Source: Blepharisma stoltei ATCC 30299 (lineage: Eukaryota > Protista > Ciliophora). Taken from it: DNA of 64,000 bases. Position 1 is the first letter of the stretch; the number at the start of each line of letters is the position of its first letter. The notes below the pieces were generated by a model. The model saw nothing but the letters and a program-made list of their open reading frames with translations, made no database searches and was not told the origin of the DNA. Location: the NCBI GenBank assembly GCA_965603825.1, contig CBFDEM010000047.1, positions 496,001-560,000 on the forward strand, written 5' to 3'. Made by a program: the position numbers and the translations under genes. This document shows positions 903-26,002 of this stretch, piece by piece.

Positions 903-1622
903 ATGGAAGCTAAATCAAGCAGATTACAGCACCACACTCGTCTTCCATCAGTAAGTCGCAGAAAAAACTCTCCAAGCCGAAAATGCACAGCCAAAGATTT
1001 GCATCTTCCAGCACTAAGCACAAAAAGAAGTGCATCGCCTTATGCGAGCACATTACTTCAAGTGCCAAGATCTAGACCTCAAACTAAGAATCCCAATCAG
1101 GGGCATCAAAGATTGCTTAATTCAAAGTTTTTTACAAAGCTTATAAAAATTAGTGGAGCGTCAGCATCAACGGCTGATACTGGGGTTGATGACTCAGAAA
1201 ATCCTATAATAGAGCCAGATAGCCCAAAAATATCAGATTTAAATCCTTCAAACAATATAAAAGCTGCTATACATAAAATAGACCCTGGATTCCAGCACTA
1301 TCTTGATTCGGACATGACTTCTGAATTAAAGTGCGATCCAAGGGCACTGTTTAGAGAGTCTATTGAGATTAAAAGAGGAAGAATCATTCAATTAGAATAC
1401 AACGATGTTGTAATTGAGGATTCTCATTTATTGCCTCTAGATTCCGAAAGTCCAAAGTTCTCACGAAGAGGAGGTGTTAGCTCCCCTTTTGATTTGGATG
1501 AGACCCGAAATAATTCTAGGTGGAATTCACCAATTCCTCCTAGGCCTGAAACTCGAAATACATATATGAAGCCTCCAAATTACTGCAGGCATTTTCGATC
1601 TAATTCTAACTTTATATCATAA
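903..1622 (+). CDS. Hypothetical Ser/Arg/Pro-rich protein, 239 aa
   Basis: Open ATG-TAA frame with AT-rich flanks; no recognised domain. Confidence 0.65.
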   Translation: MEAKSSRLQHHTRLPSVSRRKNSPSRKCTAKDLHLPALSTKRSASPYASTLLQVPRSRPQTKNPNQGHQRLLNSKFFTKLIKISGASASTADTGVDDSENPIIEPDSPKISDLNPSNNIKAAIHKIDPGFQHYLDSDMTSELKCDPRALFRESIEIKRGRIIQLEYNDVVIEDSHLLPLDSESPKFSRRGGVSSPFDLDETRNNSRWNSPIPPRPETRNTYMKPPNYCRHFRSNSNFIS

Positions 1623-1903
1623 TTTTTTGTAAAATGAGTTTAAGTAAATATTATAATTCTATAATAATCAATGCATTTTTCGTTTTATTGATGGTTTTGT
1701 TAAAATTATATGAATAAAATACAAGAAACATTGTATTATTTATTATTTATTATTGAGGTTGATTTTAAAATAAATTTTAATGGATATTGATTTAATATAA
1801 ATGTATAGATCAAGTTTTTTTCCTTTGATATAATTTCTTTTAATCGCTTATAAATTGTTTCTCATCCCCTTAAATCAAAATTTAAATAATAAATAATTTA
1901 TCT

Positions 1904-3052
1904 ATGGAATCTCGAAAACCTGATGCGTGGGGAGTTAAAGAAGTCAGCGAGTGGCTCTCATCTCTTGAACTTGGCCAATATAAACAAAAATTTGAAGCAC
2001 TGTCAATAGATGGGATGCTACTTTTTGAAATGACCGACCAAGATCTTCTGAATGATCTAGAAGTGCCTGTAAGGCTGCATCGATTCAAAATACTCGAAAA
2101 CATTAAGAAGCTCAAAGAGCACTGTCTTTCTAATCAGCGACAGCAAGATCCAGAAGATAGCTCTCAGCAGCAAGCCAATTCAAGGGCAATCCCAGCTGAA
2201 ATCGAAGAAATCAAATGAGAAATGCTAGTTTTAAAAGCAGTTGAAGGACAGCTACTCAACAACACTTTCCTAATCGGTGCCGAAGGCGCATCAATTGGTA
2301 GAAATTCTGCCTCTAACGATATCGTTATTGGTGAAAGTTTTGTAAGTCGAAAACACTGCGAAATCCGATTTAATCAACCAACCAATCAATTCTTATTGAC
2401 TGATACTGGAAGCACCACAGGGACTTTTCTTATGGTAAGGCAGCCTTTGCGTCTTGAGCTAGGAATGATGTTCCAAATGGGCTTAAGCGAATTTAAAGTA
2501 AATAATGTCCGATATAACCCCTATGGAAAAATCACATCACTTGAATTAGCCATTTATGAAGGGCCTGCAAGACAAAATGCAATTAATGTTAGTGCAGAAG
2601 GACTAACTATTGGGAGAGACATAGCAAATGCTTATTGTATCAGAGAAGATTCACAAATGAGCTCGTTTCATGGAAAAATCACTTATGATAATGGAACTTT
2701 TTATTTGGCTGATATAGGCTCAACAAATAGAACTTGGAGAAGACTGAGTGGGGAAGGGCAAAAAAGTGAACCTTATCCTTTGTTGGTTGGAGATGTAATT
2801 AAAATTGGATCAACTGTCCTTGTTGTGCAGCTTCCTGATAGCTCTCAATTGCCTTCAGTGATAAGTTCTTCTGAAAAAGAAACAGGCGAATCTGTAGTTG
2901 ATGATGCAGCCTGCAAAATTTGTTTCACGAGAGAGCTAAATGTTGCATGCTATCCATGTGGGCATATGTTCTGCGATTTCTGTGTTTCAAAATCCCATAA
3001 CTGCCCTATCTGTAGAAAATATGTGCAAGACCTGGTCAAGCTGTATAAATAA
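1904..3052 (+). CDS. SAM-FHA-FHA-RING protein (putative E3 ligase), 382 aa
   Basis: ORFs 1904-2218 and 2222-3052 joined by in-frame TGA 2216-2218; SAM (WGVKEVSEWLSSLELGQY...IDG), two FHA (IGR..S.KH..GSTTGT; IGR..S.FH..GSTN), C-terminal C3HC4 RING. Confidence 0.88.
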
Positions 3053-3182
3053 AGTTAATAAAATACTATCATGCGCATAACAAATTATAATCTCATTTGA
3101 AGTCTTGATCTAAAAAATCCTTTAAAGCCCAGTCATATTTATACGATCTCTTAAATTCAAACTTTTTTAGAATAAACAATAA

Positions 3183-4919
3183 CTATTTATTGGATTTACT
3201 AATAAATACTGGTTTGAATGTACACTTATTCATTTCTTCATTTATTTTCACTTCTTTTAATTTTTTTATTTTGTCATCTTTTAGCTTAGAAGTGTTCATC
3301 AGTCTTTCATAAAAGTCTTGGCTTCTGGACGTCCTGCTTTTTGCCATAATTTTACCTGATCCTAAGCTGATAAATGATTTTTTTTCTGTTTTTTCAAGCT
3401 CAACTTTGGTTTCTCTTTTAAATATCTGAGCCCTTTCTTCAATTGTCATTTGCTTCATAAAATCTTCAAGCTTTGCTATAAATTTGTGAAAATTCAATAC
3501 CTCATTACTACAATCTAAATCAGTGAAAAATGGAGTTAAAATATGCATAATTTTTTGATCTAAATTTTCTTTATTTATATGCTCAGAAGAAATATGTCCA
3601 TCTCTATCTGAGTCCAGTATGTTAAATAATTTTTCATACTGTTTCTCTTTGAATTGCTTATAAATTGCTTTGGAATTTTCACTAGATTTTTGTGCCATTG
3701 CTGTGGCTTTTCAAAACTCATTTGTCTGCTCATTTGCTTTATCAATCATATTTAAATGCTTGTCTCTTTGGGAATATAGGTGCTCCCAAATAGGGACACT
3801 AGAATCTCCTCTTTCTTTTGATGTAGACTTAACATGAGGATGAAAAAGCTCTTGTCCTGTAGCTTTGTCAACTGAGACATCCGATTTATGTCTTAGATGC
3901 TGTATTTTGGCATCAATTGTGAATCTCAAATTATAAAGTCTGCCGAATACTTCTTCTCTACTGTTTGAAGCAGATTTTTGGCTTATTCTGGGACTATTCA
4001 GAGAAATTGATTTTTCGGAACTTGACTTGCTCCTCGATCGCTTTATCTCAGCTTCTTTATACAAATAATCTTTGCCCACGATACGATTTTTAGTTGCAAT
4101 TGTTTCAATGATTCTTGGAGAAAAAGAGCATTCTTTCAGTTCTTCCTTCAAAACATCTTGTCTTAGAGTGTTTAGCTTTATTTGGTAGTCTTTTGCTTTA
4201 TTAATAAGCAAATCTTCAGTTTTTTCATAGTTTCTAGGAACCATAAGCGTTGAATTCTTATTGATTTTAGGTTTAAACGTGCTTTCGCTTACTTTTTCTT
4301 CTTCTAGTTTATGTTTTATTTTCTCAGCGTTTTTTTTTAATTCTTCCTTTTTCCGGAGACCATTTACGTAAAGTCACTCTCCATGGTTTGCTGATGACGG
4401 TCGAGCTTTAAACGTCGTATCTGGAGAAGGAGATAGAATTGGAGTTTTTTGAATCTTTTTGTACAATCGAGTATATACATTTTGCTTTGGTAATTTTTTA
4501 GCAATTTCATCTGATTTTTTATCAATTTTTGGAGTGTGTTTTTTATTAATAAGCATTTTATTAGTGTTTACAGCCTGTGGAGACGGTTTTGTAGGGGTTG
4601 AGAGAAACTCTGCTAGCAATGCAGAATCTGGTGAAGTCGAGGTAACGCGATTTTCAACCAGTTCTTTGTTAGATTTAATTATATTTGCCAATGATAATTC
4701 AAATGTTTTGTTTAGGTTGTGGCTGGCGGCAAATTTTTTGGCAATAATTTCAGGATCGTCATTTGAATGGACTACTAAATTAACTTGCTTTTCATTTCCT
4801 ATTTCAATAGTCAACACAAAGAGCTCACTATTTTTTAAATTCTCATCTCCACTTGCTATTGGAGATTCGTCTGGGATATTAAAATCAATAGATTCAGACA
4901 AATCTGTGGGCTGATCCAT
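3183..4919 (-). CDS. Hypothetical protein with F.P repeats and C-terminal EF-hand, 578 aa
   Basis: Three track ORFs in one frame joined by TGA at 4374 and 3711; repeated C/STFKP.I motifs; EF loop DSDRDGHIS. Confidence 0.8.
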
Positions 4920-19403: not shown

Positions 19404-20957
19404 TTAATTAACTTTACTCTCTTTTAAAAGGATTCTTTGAAACTCCTCAAAGCTAATTTTCCCATCATTACTAATGTCTGCTTTCTCAAAAAATTTGTCC
19501 CATTGTGAATTTTCAAATCCCGGAACAGCCACTTTTAATTCTCCTACGCTTAATTGACCGTCACCACTTTTATCAAAACTTTTGAACGCTTTTCTAAGTT
19601 TTTCGATCTGCTCTGAAGTATTCCAATTAGTTGCAGCAACGATAAACTCAGTAAATTCTATTTTCCCATCACCATCAATATCACAAGCCGAAATTATTTT
19701 TTCGATTTCAGAAGAATTTTCTATTGATAAGATCTTGCATCCTTCTATGAGTTCTTCTTTACCTATCGAGCCATCATTATTTGTATCTAATGACTTAAAT
19801 ATTTTTATATATTCTTTTTCTTCAGAAAAATTCGAAAATTGCTTTACAACGTAACTAAATATGGCTTTTTCTATCATACTTTGGACCTATATAAAATATA
19901 CATGAAATTTTGTTAGCTGAATCGCTGCTTGCTTACTTTCCCCGGGCAGGCTGTTGTGCTTATCATTATTTATTATTCATGGATGCTTAAGTGCTTCAGA
20001 AGCAGTAATTCTCCTGCTGTGTTCAATTGTAAGAATTTTTGTTAAGAAATCTTTTAAATCATTTGAATATATAGAAAAAAAAGAATCGCTTAACAATAAA
20101 CCCTTGTTGATTTTTTGAGTCAAGATAGCAGGTGTATCACTTGGAAATGGATGCTTACCTGTCATCATTACAAATAAAATAACACCCAGACTTCATATGT
20201 CACTTGCAGCATGACTATAATCACCTTTAAGCATCTCTGGAGACATATAATGAAACTATATGATATTTACGAATTCCAATCTATAAGGGCTATCAAAAAT
20301 CCTTGATGATTCCCCGAAGTCCTTTAGTTTTAGTAAGGCGTCACGTGACTTCGATTCAAAGACTATATTTTCAGGTCTGATACTTTTATGGACAATTCCT
20401 TTGCTGTGATAAAACTGCATGATTTTTAATATTTCTCCAATGTAATTGCTTGCCTGCTGCTCATTTATTCCATGATCTAAAATTCTTGTGAAGAGGCTAT
20501 CACCTTTTAAGTACTCAAGGACAAAATAAATTTTATCATTTGTTATCATAATGTCATAAACTTTTTCAATTCCTGGATGATCCTAAATGACATTTACAAG
20601 CTCTAAAATTATATTTAATTCATTCCAGTCGCTATCCTTTGCTTTAGGATTAATAATTGTTTTATTGATTTCTTTGATAATTCTTTGACAATTAAATCGT
20701 TTATCAACAGCAAGCTTACTATCACCAAATTGAGTTTCTTGGAACTTCTTAATAACAGAAAAGTTTTCTCTAACCCATGAAGGATCAATTTTTAAAACAT
20801 GAGTTTGAGCTGTTGCCTTTCTACTTAATTCATCATCTTGAGATTTATTTTTGGAGTTCTTTGTATAGTTTTTTGTAAACCTTTTCCTTTTTAATTTACC
20901 TTTCTTTGGAGAGTTATCTGCTTTGGGATCTTCTTGTCTAGAGTCACAGCATCCCAT
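19404..20957 (-). CDS. CDPK-like pseudokinase B (MGCC N-terminus, 4 EF-hands), about 502 aa, 3 introns
   Basis: HKSIRPEN replaces HRDLKPEN; TGA at 20193 (SDI-W-SLG) and 19977 (HP-W); introns 20583-20597, 20256-20270, 19887-19901. Confidence 0.88.
19887..19901 (-). other. 15-nt intron GTATATTTTATATAG
   Basis: In-frame TAG removed; position conserved with paralog. Confidence 0.9.
20256..20270 (-). other. 15-nt intron GTAAATATCATATAG
   Basis: Removal restores ...LEF-FHYMSPEM. Confidence 0.92.
20583..20597 (-). other. 15-nt intron GTAAATGTCATTTAG
   Basis: Removal restores LEL-DHPGIEK. Confidence 0.92.
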
Positions 20958-21254
20958 TTTAATTAAAAAATAAAATAAATCCTTTAACAAATAATTCTCT
21001 TTTTTTTAGAGACAAAGTTGCTCAAAATAAAGTAAACAAAATGATTTGAAATTATTTACTATAATGATTTATAATAGATCAGCAATCAAAATACGATAAA
21101 ATAATAGTGATTAGTTTATGTTGAGAAATTGCAGAAATAACGATGTTTTTTTATAAAGCAGAAGTTAAAATATAAAATAATTTTTTTTAGATTTTTAAAA
21201 GTTTCATTTCTTTGAAATGAATGTAATTAATATCTAATAATTAAAATAAATATA

Positions 21255-24200
21255 CTAGCTTCTCTTAGGATAAACTAACTGCTCATCAACAAAATAATTT
21301 TTCATCTTCTTTTGGAGATATTTTCCAACTAGTTCTTTTTCCATAGTTTTGACTGAATCCTTCGCAAAATCTTTAATTGATGCCATTATGATTCCCTCTT
21401 CACCTTCACATTTTAAAGTCACTAAAAATCTGATTCGATATTTCTTGCATGTTTGCAATATATCGTCACTATTTAAATTCCCATAGTCATAAACAGCTGA
21501 AATGTCTAATTTTCAGAGTTTTAGCACCAAATTAACCTTTTCATGATGCAAAGTCTTAAAATCTATTTTCTGTCCATGAGTTTTGCATATGACTATAACA
21601 AGTGGGCCTTTTATTCAAGGATCAGTGTTTCCTTGAATAATTATCTTGATTATTTTTTCGACAAAAATACGAGACCCGATGCCTGAAATCTTATTTTGAC
21701 TGGCTTTTGAATTAAGCGAAAATGAATCAATTAAATTATCATATCTTCCACCTGAAGCAATAGAAATTCTTTCTTTGCTTATCATTTTTCCTTTAGCAAC
21801 TGATTGAGATGTGGTTACTTTAAATATAAATCCAGAGTAACATAAGATTTCATCGTGTATTAATCCAAGATCAACTAAGAAATTAACGTTGTAGTCTTTA
21901 CAAGTTTCTTCCAAGTGTTTTAAATCAATGTCTAAAATCCTTACAAATGAATTATACTTTCAAATAGAATTTTTTTTTATTGTTTCGATAAGTGATTGCA
22001 AATTTTCTTTCAGCTTTAAATAATATCCTAATCTTTCAGCAGAGTTTGCAGAAATTCCTAAATCAATTAAATCTTTTTTAACTTTTGCCCATTTTCTTCT
22101 TGGTATGTCTCGGCATAATGACAAAACTTTCATTCTTATATTTTCTGTTATTTCGCAATGATGCAAAATAATGTCAAGTAGCCTTGTATCATTTACTGTA
22201 ATTTCTAGCATTGGTAAGCTATTTCCAAACTGCTCTAAAGCTAACAGGGTGACTTTGAGAAGTTCTGCTTTGTATAAATATTTAAAAGAACTCAGCTGTT
22301 CAGGATCGTAACAAAAATCGATGCTTGCTTCCAATGATTCCTCTGGATGTTCGCCTGCAGCAAGAGGTTTGTAGACGTTTGATATTGTAAATCTCTTAAG
22401 AACTCCTTTTATGCTGATTGTATGTAGAAATTTTGCCCATGGGCAAAGTAAATTGCTATTTAGCTGGACTAAAATCCCTGAAGATTCCAAAAACACAGCA
22501 TTTTTATTGCTTTCGATTGGAGTTTTTTTCATTGTCCCATCTTTTTGATACCAAAATATTGAAACATTTGTTGAGTATGGCATGAGCAATGGAGTATTTA
22601 TTTCTAAAGCCCCAGATTTATTTAGCACTGCTTGCAGTTTATTTATGACATTGCTTTTAATCATCGCTTCGATTTTCTTATTGAATTTTTTTCCACCTGA
22701 TAGTTCTGATATTCCTTCAGATATATTGTATGTAAAATTTTGATGCTTAAGATTTGACCTCTCGAATAAAGCATGAAGCAGCATATTATTTTCTGAGTTT
22801 TTAGGATTCAAGCTTATATTCATAAACTCACTGAAAGCTTTTGGGTCAATCTTATGGTATAGCAAGCCACTTTGGAGAAGTTCCTGTGCAGATGGTCTGT
22901 TGTCGGGAATAAGCTCAGTGAGTCATAAAATTATTTTGGGAACCTCTTTGGGGACAGTTTCTAAAAAGTCTCCAGGCAAAATTCTATTATCTCTTAATTT
23001 CATGATTTCTTCTACTCTTTGCATCATTGATCCGAAGGGCCTTCACATTTCAAAGAAAATAATTCCAAGAGAATACATGTCAGTTTTTAAATTGTATTTT
23101 CCGGAGACTTTTTGCTCAGGGGAACAATAAATTGGGGTGCCAATTCCTGTGCTTAAGCTTTCGCTTATCTGTCTTTTTAAAGAGGCTTTTTCAGGTTTTA
23201 AATTTGTCGTTGTGGCTAGTCCAAAGTCTCCCAGCTTCACTTCTCCAAACTCATTTAAAAATATATTTGATGGCTTTAAGTCTCTGTGTATAGTTCCCTT
23301 AGAGTGAATATATACTAAACCTTGCAATATTTCTCTCAGCATTTTCCAGATTTCTATTGGAGATGGAATTTTTTGATCCAGGAGGGTGCGAAGAGTATCT
23401 CCTGCGCAATATTCCATTTGTATGTAAAGTTTGCTAACTTCGGGATCAAATTCATGTAGCACTGATCCAGTCTTATCTGAGGCAATTTCTAAATCTTCGC
23501 TTAGATCATCTTCACTGCTGCTTTCTTCTTCGCTGCTACTTTCTTCTTCGCTATCATAGCTATCTTGTTCATCAGAGTCAGATCCGCTGCTTTCATCCTC
23601 TTCAAACCAAGCATTATGATATCTCACAATATTTTGGTGTTGCAATTTAGACAACAGAACAACTTCTTTCAATATATATCTAATATGGTTCTCCTTTTTT
23701 CCTTTTAATTTTATCTTTTTAATCGCATAAATACTCCCATCAATTTTATTTTTTGCTTTATAAACACTCCCTCCTCCACCTTTGCCAATTCTTATTTCTT
23801 CTTCAAAATATCTTCTATACTCAAACCCACTTATAGTACAAGACAAAGTTGGTTCAGGCAAATTTATTTCTTCTTCTTTCTTTTTCTCATTGATTTCAAG
23901 CTGCATTGAAGGCTCTTTTTTCTTTCTTTTTTGAAGTTCTCCATATATTTCTTCCATCAGCAAACCAGAATTGTCACGTTTCAATTCTTGTTCAACTGGC
24001 TCAGGAATTGATTCTTCTGGCTCAATATTGTATTTCATCAATTCTCGTTGTATGAGATCACACATATCGTAGACCATGGTTTGCGAAACCTTGGATTTTT
24101 CTTCAATTAAAGCTTGGACTTTTAATTTAATATCATGAATCACGTCTTTATGAATATTTACTGCGTTTATTAAGGAGAATATTGGAGGTACATGAGGATA

Positions 24201-24782
24201 GCCAGGAACATAAGTAATTGAAAGGTAAATGCTGCTAAAATTCAAGGCAGAATCTGAAGGATTAGAACGTATAAATATTTTAAAAGAAGCACTACATAAT
24301 TCAGTCAGAGGGTTTAAAATAGTAACATCATCAGAAAAAATAGCCAATAAAGCGTCTAGTTCTTCTTTTTGATCGTTGTAAGTGTTAAAGGCTTCAACTG
24401 CATCTTCAGTAGGCGATATTTCACAATTAATTGTGTTTCCGAATTGATTTTCTTTATTATTTTCTGAAGATTTATTTTCTTCAATCAAACTTGGAAGCTT
24501 AGCTTCTTCATTTATTATTTGCTGAATATCTTTGGGTTCTTTTGTTTCAATTAAAACAGGAGAGTGAATTTCTTCTTCATGTATTGGGTGCACTTCCTCA
24601 ATTGGTTTTAATTTTTCAGGCAATTTTTGAAGAACTTTTTTGCTTCTTTTTCTTTTTCCATGCCTTTTTGGAGGTTGAGTTTGGATTATTTGTGGAGGTT
24701 TAGGCTGGCTTTTATTAAATCATAAATAACCAAAAAATATTCCGAATAGAAAGGATGAGAGTATAATTAGTAGTCCTTCCAT
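21255..24782 (-). CDS. GCN2: eIF2-alpha kinase GCN2 (N-terminal TM anchor, RWD, kinase with acidic insert, HisRS-like), 1175 aa
   Basis: One frame through TGA at 24720, 23043, 22923, 21960, 21615, 21513; RWD (EELDAL..IF, YP..PP), IGKGGGG, YAIKKI, LYIQMEYC, HRDLKPSN, DFGLA, HisRS-like KRF.IS.VY and IASGGRYDNLI. Confidence 0.92.
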
Positions 24783-24979
24783 AATTTAAAAATTTTGTAT
24801 ATTACGTGTTTTGCATTTATATCAGAAATAAGTTTTAAAAGAGTTTTTTTAAATATTTCTAGGATTTTATTATCGAAAATGAAAAATTTCGAGCTTACTG
24901 CAATCAAAATACTTAAACTATTTTTTTGATAATCTGAGTACCAATTATGCCAATAAAAAATATAAGGGTTATAAATTAA

Positions 24980-26002
24980 ATGGATCCAGACGAAGAAATT
25001 CTCAAAGAATACCAGCAAGAAATTCGCAACATGAAAGATGAGATCATTCAGCTTAATAGACAAATCGCTCAAGCCGAAAATGCTGAGAAAGAGCTTGATG
25101 AAAATAACCTCCAACCAGAAGATCGAGATGAAATCTTGAAAAAACAGTCACTTTTAAGGCACTGCCAAGAAGAAATTGAAGAGCTCACTGAGCAGCTTAA
25201 CAAACTTAGAGAAACCAATATTGAGCTCGCTGAGAGCTGTGAAGAGCTTAACAATAGGATTGATCCGCTTCCTATCTCTGACAATCAGCTTGAAGAGCTC
25301 AGAGAACAAATTGCAGCCTTGGAAAAAGAAAATGAAGACCTCAGAAGGCAAAATAGTGAAATTGAAAGCTCGGGCCTTAGGGAATGGGAAAATTTGTCCC
25401 CGCATGCTTCTAATGAATTTTTTGTGAATCTCCAAAAGAAACTCTCAACATTGGAGCAAGAAAATACAACTCTTTCAGCAAAATATAAGAAAGCTGAAGC
25501 AGAGACCAAGAGATTGAAGGAAAATTGTGAAAAAGCTGCCCATAGGTTTAAAAATAACGAAGACACCAGAACTAAGCTGCATTTGCTAGAAGAGAGCTTA
25601 GAAAGATGTGTGCAAACTGAAAATGACTTAAAAGAAGAGATAGATGACGTGGAAAGACAAATCATGCAAAAGTCAGCAAGTACTGAAGGTCAAGATATTA
25701 GAAGCCTGCAACACATGATTAGAGATCTCAATGAAAAGATCAGCCAAGAAAAAGCTCAATGCACAAGACTAGAAAAACAGTTACAAGATAAGCAGCAAGA
25801 ATTGAGAACTGTGAAGATAACAGCAAACCAACCAGTCAGCAAGACTTCGACTAAGCTCAGCAATGATCTGGAATTGCTTGGAAAAGTCCTTGCAGATAAG
25901 ATGAAGTCAGTAAGAGAAAAAGATAAAGAAATCGCTGAGCTGACCTTGAAATATGAAGAAGCCAAGATGCAGCTTTATGGGCCAGAGAAATTCAACGTCT
26001 AA
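24980..26002 (+). CDS. Hypothetical coiled-coil protein, 340 aa
   Basis: Uninterrupted heptad-rich ORF, divergent from GCN2. Confidence 0.8.
   Translation: MDPDEEILKEYQQEIRNMKDEIIQLNRQIAQAENAEKELDENNLQPEDRDEILKKQSLLRHCQEEIEELTEQLNKLRETNIELAESCEELNNRIDPLPISDNQLEELREQIAALEKENEDLRRQNSEIESSGLREWENLSPHASNEFFVNLQKKLSTLEQENTTLSAKYKKAEAETKRLKENCEKAAHRFKNNEDTRTKLHLLEESLERCVQTENDLKEEIDDVERQIMQKSASTEGQDIRSLQHMIRDLNEKISQEKAQCTRLEKQLQDKQQELRTVKITANQPVSKTSTKLSNDLELLGKVLADKMKSVREKDKEIAELTLKYEEAKMQLYGPEKFNV

Follow-up and report, generated by a model that had tools for sequence, protein, structure and literature searches.

Can a GCN2-type kinase be tethered to a membrane by its own N terminus? GCN2 is the most widespread of the eIF2-alpha kinases. 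To our knowledge it is everywhere described as a soluble, ribosome-associated sensor, and the membrane-bound eIF2-alpha kinases that we know of sense through lumenal domains. The question was raised by a minus-strand gene in the window, by which we mean the whole stretch of 64,000 nucleotides of Blepharisma stoltei ATCC 30299 DNA that was analyzed. A preliminary description, made from the letters of this stretch, had proposed a signal-anchored GCN2 whose domains lie in the cytosol. The reading frame, its transcription, its relatives, and the predicted topology of its product were analyzed in turn.

Reading frame and genetic code

The gene is delimited by the following elements.

21255 to 24782, minus strand: coding sequence of the GCN2-type kinase, intron-less, 1175 codons plus the TAG stop
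24780 to 24782, minus strand: start codon ATG; Met1 is invariant across the clade described below
24786 to 24788, minus strand: in-frame TAA, one codon (ATT) 5' of the start
24720 to 24722, minus strand: codon 21, a TGA translated as Trp within the predicted anchor

Translated with TGA as Trp, the frame runs on the minus strand to the TAG at 21255-21257 and holds in-frame TGA at codons 21, 580, 620, 941, 1056, and 1090 and five TGG codons. The ATG at 24782 had been named as the only in-frame one 5' of the RWD domain and the TAA at 24786-24788 as closing the frame upstream. Both statements were confirmed in the sequence, where ATT separates the TAA from the ATG and the second in-frame ATG is codon 236, within the RWD domain (about residues 137-248). 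Under the standard or bacterial code, codons 1-20 split off as a separate mini-ORF of 20 amino acids. The claim that standard-code annotation drops the anchor thus holds for this gene, and it holds likewise for the public Logan call P0001 of an ortholog.

TGA is a sense codon (Trp) in this genome. In the downstream CDPK-like genes it stands where kinases have a conserved Trp (D-x-W-S-x-G and H-P-W), relatives free of in-frame TGA show Trp opposite TGA codons 580 and 620 of the GCN2 gene, and most of the long kinase frames genome-wide have TGA as their only "stops." The assembly comprises 41.46 Mb in 64 contigs, with about 33% GC and 15-nt introns; the published macronuclear genome of the same strain has 41 Mbp, 66% AT, introns of 15/16 bp, and UGA as Trp (PMC9942806). 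The anchor is independent of the recoded TGA, because a paralog on contig C18 and 10 relatives have the module with no stop codon in it. In the ortholog L009, TGA stands at codon 4, next to position 5, where two relatives carry Trp. L009 and the fragment P0002 read TGA as a sense codon, as in Blepharisma.

Transcription of the gene and of its 5' end

Assembled contigs of four public runs covering the stretch were used as RNA data. The four runs are RNA in practice, because the 15-nt introns of the neighboring CDPK gene, at 20256 and 20582, are missing from their contigs and the intergenic regions on both flanks are bare. The GCN2 gene is tiled by these contigs from 21264 to 24780 with nothing omitted and is therefore without an intron. 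One contig of run X1 (24345-24780, 0 mismatches; record 7) spans the anchor-coding part with its TGA unchanged. It ends two bases before reaching the A of the start codon, and X1 is the sole run of the four that reaches 24780; the contigs of the other three stop at 24690-24692, about 90 nt downstream of the ATG. Since RNA contigs reach 24780, the anchor-coding part is transcribed. The preliminary description had called for 5' RNA coverage starting at 24782, which was thus approached to within two bases by X1 and missed by the remaining runs.

The contigs define no 5' end, and the transcript may be shorter than the start at 24782 implies. A hypothetical transcript beginning at about 24692 has no in-frame ATG before the middle of the RWD domain. 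Falling short of 5' ends is normal for these data, because the contigs of the divergent neighbor (ATG at 24980), which is much more highly expressed, also begin 24-50 nt inside its ORF.

The first 20 codons could in principle be an artefact of the gene model, either a uORF ended by TGA or a chance peptide in AT-rich DNA with the true start elsewhere. They do form a stand-alone ORF of 20 codons under the standard code, and three of the four RNA assemblies end about 90 nt past the ATG. We give this reading hardly any credence: TGA is a sense codon throughout the genome, the X1 contig covers 24345-24780, short 5' contigs are what the neighboring gene leads one to expect, and there is no other in-frame ATG before codon 236. 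The paralog and 10 relatives carry the module in one frame with the RWD domain with no stop between them, and M1, G14, and G18 are invariant. A uORF or a wrong start was rejected on these comparative data.

An alternative 5' exon, suggested by a loose end of an X1 contig at 24281, was also discarded. The loose sequence matches an unrelated locus (C13:522558-522587), so this end is an assembly chimera, and other RNA contigs bridge position 24281.

The N-terminal module

Upstream of the RWD domain, three segments were distinguished.

24717 to 24776, minus strand: residues 3-22, predicted to form a transmembrane (TM) signal-anchor helix, one face of which carries small-xxx-G14-xxx-G18
24636 to 24713, minus strand: codons 24-38, a Pro-rich juxtamembrane spacer, and codons 39-49 (24636-24668), the polybasic patch
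24375 to 24635, minus strand: acidic low-complexity linker, codons 50-136, as seen in the pairwise alignment with the C18 paralog

The protein starts with M-E-G, followed by 20 residues without a charged or strongly polar side chain. The Kyte-Doolittle mean over 19 residues is 2.21 for residues 4-22, the highest of the protein, with 1.28 for the runner-up, and a crude, position-independent Hessa sum gives -2.0 kcal/mol for this anchor. N-K-S-Q follows the helix, and then come the Pro-rich stretch and the K/R patch; residues 22-50 (29 residues) contain 10 K/R and 0 D/E. The hydrophobic helix and the basic patch after it, as first described, were therefore both recovered. In the linker, an insertion of about 70 residues is specific to the lineage of the window paralog, and a similar linker is present in the ortholog L009.

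Domain architecture

The window protein was searched (Pfam etc.) in pieces between its TGA codons, and the full-length translation with TGA as Trp was used only in scripts. The following domains were assigned.

24039 to 24374, minus strand: RWD domain, about residues 137-248 (Pfam PF05773, E = 2e-16)
22860 to 23819, minus strand: catalytic domain of eIF2-alpha-kinase type (Pfam Pkinase, E = 1.9e-46), with an acidic/Ser-rich insert
21258 to 22715, minus strand: HisRS-like region; weak match to PF13393 (tRNA-synt_His) at E = 3e-4, below the cut-off

In the translation, the catalytic Lys and the HRD and DFG motifs are intact. The HisRS-like region, weakly matched in the window protein, gives a PF13393 match at 1.7e-8 in the relative P0161. 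A further relative, P0004, was aligned by BLASTP with Gcn2 of S. octosporus and shows 30% identity over 765 residues spanning the kinase and HisRS-like domains; the HisRS-like region aligns up to the GGxYD motif, and the RWD domain aligns too. The best named matches of the clade are GCN2 proteins, and the tree groups it with GCN2s.

Two parts of canonical GCN2 were sought and not recovered in these proteins. The RWD and kinase domains are only about 70 residues apart. P0004 has no separate counterpart of the S. octosporus pseudokinase region, which in BLASTP aligns weakly back onto the single kinase domain of P0004. The match to the C-terminal domain (CTD) model PF12745 extends over 261 positions in S. 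octosporus Gcn2 and over positions 11-87, below the cut-off, in P0161, and the pieces of the window GCN2 gave none. The 3' end of the window gene encodes a short anticodon-binding-like tail in place of a full CTD, some 150 residues follow the GGxYD motif, and P0004 likewise retains a short piece of the anticodon-binding/C-terminal region. As judged from its domains, the kinase is of GCN2 type, with the RWD, eIF2-alpha kinase, and HisRS-like domains all present and the pseudokinase domain and CTD missing. By the same domain comparison, the anchored clade as a whole is without the pseudokinase domain and most of the CTD of canonical GCN2. The contrast with canonical GCN2 drawn in the preliminary description thus stood as regards the additional anchor and was too small as regards these missing domains.

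Relatives of the gene

Relatives were collected by an exhaustive profile-free search and by a word search seeded with a full-length relative. They form a close-knit family, each protein being about 1100 residues long, and a large score gap sets this family apart from the classical GCN2s. All full-length members (P0003-P0005 and P0156-P0161) and the fragment P0002 start with the module. The closest match, P0001, seemed to be anchor-less, its public gene call beginning after an in-frame TGA. In the true frame on its contig (L009), an ATG directly follows an in-frame TAA and opens M-E-S-W (W encoded by TGA); an apolar stretch of about 20 residues comes next, and then a K/R cluster. Annotation in which TGA counts as a stop removes the module, as happened in this call. 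In sum, 13 of 13 sequences carry it: the window copy, the C18 paralog, and 11 relatives from other assemblies.

Met opens the module and is followed by 2-4 polar residues, most of them acidic, an apolar run of 14-22 residues (typically 16-20), a Pro-rich spacer, and 7-10 K/R. The N-terminal alignment, made with 11 of the sequences, shows 27-65% identity over the N-terminal 240-270 residues. Across the 13 sequences, M1 and the GxxxG glycines G14 and G18 are invariant, and the first 20 residues contain no indel. Position 10 is a nearly invariant Ala, replaced by Ser in P0156 and the window copy. The charges flanking the helix are conserved in all 13: 0 to -2 on the N side, and 9-13 K/R versus 0-5 D/E in the 35 residues of the C side. 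The K/R cluster lies 10-17 residues beyond the helix in every sequence, and usually one K/R is found within 5 residues.

Among the approximately 255 other GCN2/PEK homologs retrieved, a screen for an apolar N terminus (cut-off of 1.5 for the 17-residue hydropathy mean) brought up a single sequence at the threshold, P0036, with a mean of 1.51. Together with the hydropathy peak of the window protein and the 13 of 13 carriers, this speaks against a chance occurrence. In the tree, the sequences with the predicted anchor fall into a single clade (SH-aLRT 96), with P0021 as its sister. P0021 comes from an activated-sludge metagenome and has a basic patch and no apolar start; an in-frame stop directly precedes its ATG. 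A sister without the helix points to a single gain on the stem of the clade or to a single loss in P0021.

Evidence of kinship to Blepharisma covers L009, P0002, and L016 among the relatives. On L016, the contig of P0004, a CNOT9 gene is 76% identical to the Blepharisma copy and at most 63% identical to that of any named eukaryote, so the source of P0004 is closer to Blepharisma than is any named eukaryote in the search.

A second copy with the predicted anchor in the genome

The whole genome was searched in six frames with two queries, the RWD-plus-kinase piece and the HisRS-like piece of the window protein. One other gene covers the RWD domain; it lies on contig C18 and is 55% identical to the window GCN2. 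The HisRS-like query found the window gene, the C18 gene, and genuine HisRS. A soluble GCN2 paralog was not found genome-wide, and both genes that combine RWD, kinase, and HisRS-like domains carry the predicted anchor. The survey of homologs for the anchor and for a soluble paralog, as proposed at the outset, thus ended with the module in every clade member and no soluble paralog in the genome.

After its initial M-E-D-P, the C18 paralog has an apolar run of 18 residues, which a Pro-rich spacer separates from a K/R/H cluster; this part contains no TGA. AlphaFold2 was run on its first 250 residues as a stand-in for the window anchor, which contains a TGA. The model has a helix at residues 4-20 (confidence 63-71), disorder at 24-60, and an RWD domain with pLDDT of about 90.

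Predicted topology and alternative readings

According to the positive-inside and charge-difference rules, the more positive flank of a membrane helix stays cytosolic. An N-out/C-in topology is predicted for the clade, because an N flank of 0 to -2 faces a strongly positive C flank. The reading that we consider likely is that of an active eIF2-alpha kinase of GCN2 type, held permanently at a membrane by a predicted, uncleaved N-terminal signal-anchor helix. Of the original proposal of a signal-anchored GCN2 with cytosolic domains, the segment itself has proved genuine, transcribed, and conserved, and the orientation has become a prediction from the flank charges.

The same segment is N-terminal and apolar, as a cleavable ER signal peptide would be, and small residues after the helix in the paralog and in some relatives (...V-S-S, ...N-S) could fit a -3/-1 cleavage site. 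The kinase would then be lumenal or secretory, or would be released after cleavage. This is very improbable. Positive charge is absent from the n-region (net 0 to -2), the stretch of mostly 16-22 apolar residues exceeds a typical signal-peptide core, and the 7-10 K/R placed 10-17 residues behind it in 13 of 13 sequences disfavor translocation of the C side. The RWD, eIF2-alpha kinase, and HisRS-like domains are established to act on cytosolic ribosomes, tRNA, and eIF2-alpha, and real signal peptides and lumenal domains occur in separate PERK-like kinases of this genome.

How firmly the helix would insert differs among the members. The crude Hessa sum is -2.0 for the window copy, -5.0 for the ortholog L009, and +0.5 to +3.9 for the other 11. 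Many of the clade anchors are thus only moderately hydrophobic, and their insertion is not guaranteed. This moderate hydrophobicity in 11 of 13, the invariant GxxxG suggestive of helix-helix packing, and the AlphaFold2 helix confidence of 63-71 would also suit a helix that does not span the membrane, being either a soluble or peripheral element that self-associates through GxxxG or a monotopic or lipid-droplet hairpin; the kinase would be cytosolic or loosely membrane-associated. We regard such a helix as unlikely in view of the 14-22 residues free of charged or strongly polar side chains at the extreme N terminus and of the conserved charge asymmetry, the classic signature of a single-pass anchor. 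Moreover, soluble GxxxG helices are normally amphipathic, and the clade helix is not.

The conserved K/R cluster (K-R-x-G-K-R-K-R-x-K-K) also resembles a monopartite NLS, so that helix and cluster together might direct the protein to the macronuclear envelope or the inner nuclear membrane. NLS-dependent inner-nuclear-membrane targeting, as of yeast Heh1/Heh2, needs a long linker between NLS and helix; here the cluster is only 10-17 residues away, and the substrates and activators of GCN2 are cytoplasmic. There is little chance that nuclear targeting accounts for the module.

Under the preferred reading of an uncleaved signal anchor, the membrane would, at a guess, be the ER or the mitochondrial outer membrane, with the kinase on its cytosolic face. 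The shortness of the helix argues against the plasma membrane.

Comparison with known systems

With canonical GCN2/EIF2AK4 of yeast, human, and Arabidopsis, the clade shares the RWD domain, a kinase with an acidic insert, and the HisRS-like region. In contrast to it, the clade adds an apolar helix and a polybasic patch before the RWD domain, a combination absent from the approximately 255 homologs except the borderline P0036, and its proteins have about 1100 amino acids, compared to 1500-1700 in the canonical form.

The predicted membrane tethering with a cytosolic catalytic domain is shared with PERK/EIF2AK3 and with the trypanosomatid kinases TbeIF2K2 and TcK2 (PMC4450062, PMC10300260), the trypanosomatid enzymes being PERK-like in topology (PMC4450062, PMC10300260). 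In PERK-type kinases a signal peptide is combined with a large sensor on the lumenal or extracellular side and an internal TM helix, and neither an RWD nor a HisRS-like domain is present. This layout is absent from the anchored clade, in which 2-4 residues precede the helix and the remainder consists of the RWD, kinase, and HisRS-like domains. Because the non-cytosolic part would amount to these 2-4 residues, sensing in the predicted topology must be cytosolic.

Two known anchors resemble the module in build. The anchor of microsomal cytochrome P450 (type III, N-lumen/C-cytosol) has a short N terminus of acidic character, then some 20 apolar residues in a helix, followed by basic residues and a hinge rich in Pro that leads to the cytosolic catalytic domain. 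The order of elements is similar to that of the clade module, with no homology and with a kinase as the cargo of the clade; unlike in the P450 anchor, the basic cluster of the clade is much longer (7-10 K/R) and comes after the Pro-rich stretch. Anchors of the Tom20/Tom70/OM45 type consist of a moderately hydrophobic N-terminal helix with a positive C flank, the bulk of the protein being cytosolic. Most of the clade helices are likewise Gly/Ala/Ser/Phe-rich and moderately hydrophobic. The decisive basic residues of the Tom20 type lie within about 5 residues of the helix, whereas the main cluster of the clade is 10-17 residues away, and the helices of the window copy and of L009 exceed typical outer-membrane anchors in hydrophobicity.

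A literature search for membrane-anchored GCN2 in ciliates and protists found no N-terminally anchored GCN2. The nearest reports concern the PERK-like trypanosomatid kinases and the Stentor kinome, the latter a preprint in which PEK pseudokinases are discussed and no anchor is mentioned.

Proposed mechanism and its implications

In the model that we propose, the helix would insert with 2-4 N-terminal residues outside, on the lumenal or intermembrane side, and a disordered tether of 35-115 residues would connect it to the RWD, kinase, and HisRS-like domains in the cytosol. Small-xxx-G-xxx-G is a classic packing motif of transmembrane helices, and the GxxxG face could mediate helix-helix dimerization within the membrane. 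The polybasic patch may bind acidic lipids, ribosomal RNA, or both. The GxxxG dimer and the patch would together take over the dimerizing and ribosome-binding roles of the missing CTD and pseudokinase domain, a compensation hypothesized because GxxxG is invariant and the domains for dimerization and ribosome docking have been lost. Activation would proceed via RWD-GCN1 contact on stalled or collided ribosomes and via the HisRS-like domain, and it would be confined to ribosomes near the membrane.

From the sequences compared here, the sensing of starvation and ribosome stalling in Blepharisma and its relatives is probably tethered to an organelle surface. A wider proposal is made with more reserve, as we rate its chances at somewhat below even: a ciliate lineage may have replaced soluble GCN2 with an obligate tethered form, so that its integrated stress response, triggered by collided ribosomes or uncharged tRNA, would be read only at the organelle surface, on ER-bound ribosomes or at the mitochondrial outer membrane, with the GxxxG dimer and the patch substituting for the lost domains.

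The arrangement, in which the cytosolic sensing domains of GCN2 (RWD and HisRS-like) sit on a predicted membrane anchor with no soluble copy in the genome, makes this lineage a natural experiment for that very reason. It bears on whether GCN2 signaling can be spatially restricted and on what the pseudokinase and C-terminal domains are needed for. The predictions can be tested in Stentor or Blepharisma, for which RNAi and imaging are available.

Stress-response genes elsewhere in the genome

The PERK-like genes of the genome (L003-L007) encode signal peptides and lumenal domains. For Gcn1_N (PF12074), zero matches were obtained in the genome, and the control was likewise without a match. A GCN1 candidate was identified in a frame of 2260 amino acids by a HEAT_GCN1 match over the cut-off. 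Two eIF2-alpha copies are present in the genome, and both keep the acceptor-serine motif (...LSRKRIRS).

Predicted N-terminal tether and the sister of the anchored clade

The length of the tether ahead of the RWD domain varies within the anchored clade, the 13 GCN2-type proteins that carry the predicted N-terminal helix and basic patch. The tether is about 115 residues long in the window GCN2 and in its ortholog on contig L009, compared to 35 to 60 residues in the other members. Both proteins are lengthened by an extra acidic segment of low complexity, about 70 residues long, in the linker between the basic patch and RWD (window positions 24375-24635, minus strand). The sister of the clade, P0021 from an activated-sludge metagenome (L021, nt 907-4023), is a short GCN2 of 1038 residues, in which the basic patch immediately precedes the RWD domain, the apolar N-terminus is absent and an in-frame stop lies just 5' of the ATG.

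Transcript ends and neighbouring genes

In three of the four runs, RNA contigs shared an end point at 24690-24692, about 90 nt inside the GCN2 open reading frame. These ends could reflect a drop in coverage near the 5' end, a two-strain variant bubble, or a minor internal transcription start. Two genes flank the GCN2 gene:

24980-26002, plus strand, divergent neighbour whose coiled-coil product has 340 residues, separated by 197 bp from the start of GCN2
19500-20970, minus strand, CDPK-like gene directly downstream of GCN2

Contig depth was 40 to 107 for the divergent neighbour, compared to 3 to 20 for GCN2. The RNA contigs of this neighbour began at 25004-25030, and its true start may therefore be the second methionine, at about 25031. 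The CDPK-like protein begins with M-G-C-C, likely an acylation site, and two 15-nt introns in its gene, at 20256 and 20582, were confirmed by RNA contigs of three runs, from which precisely these 15 nt were missing at each site.

On two contigs of relatives, L013 (nt 1934-1940) and L016 (nt 3989-4001), both with a GC content of 41-42% and no in-frame TGA, the gene call for the divergent neighbour starts just 5 to 11 bp away from the ATG of the GCN2-like gene. This spacing reflects either extreme compactness of these genomes or neighbour starts that were called too far upstream.

Related kinase and synthetase genes

Five more eIF2-alpha-kinase-like genes, L003 to L007 (contigs C49, C33, C4, C44, and C36, respectively), were found in the B. 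stoltei genome, with kinase domains at 37-42% identity and signal-peptide-like N-termini. At least two of them, L006 and L007, have a PERK-like topology, in which a predicted lumenal portion precedes an internal transmembrane helix. The genuine histidyl-tRNA synthetase of the genome, L012 on contig C9, lies in an 838-residue frame (locus nt 322-2838), in which the class II core is preceded by an N-terminal extension of about 400 residues.
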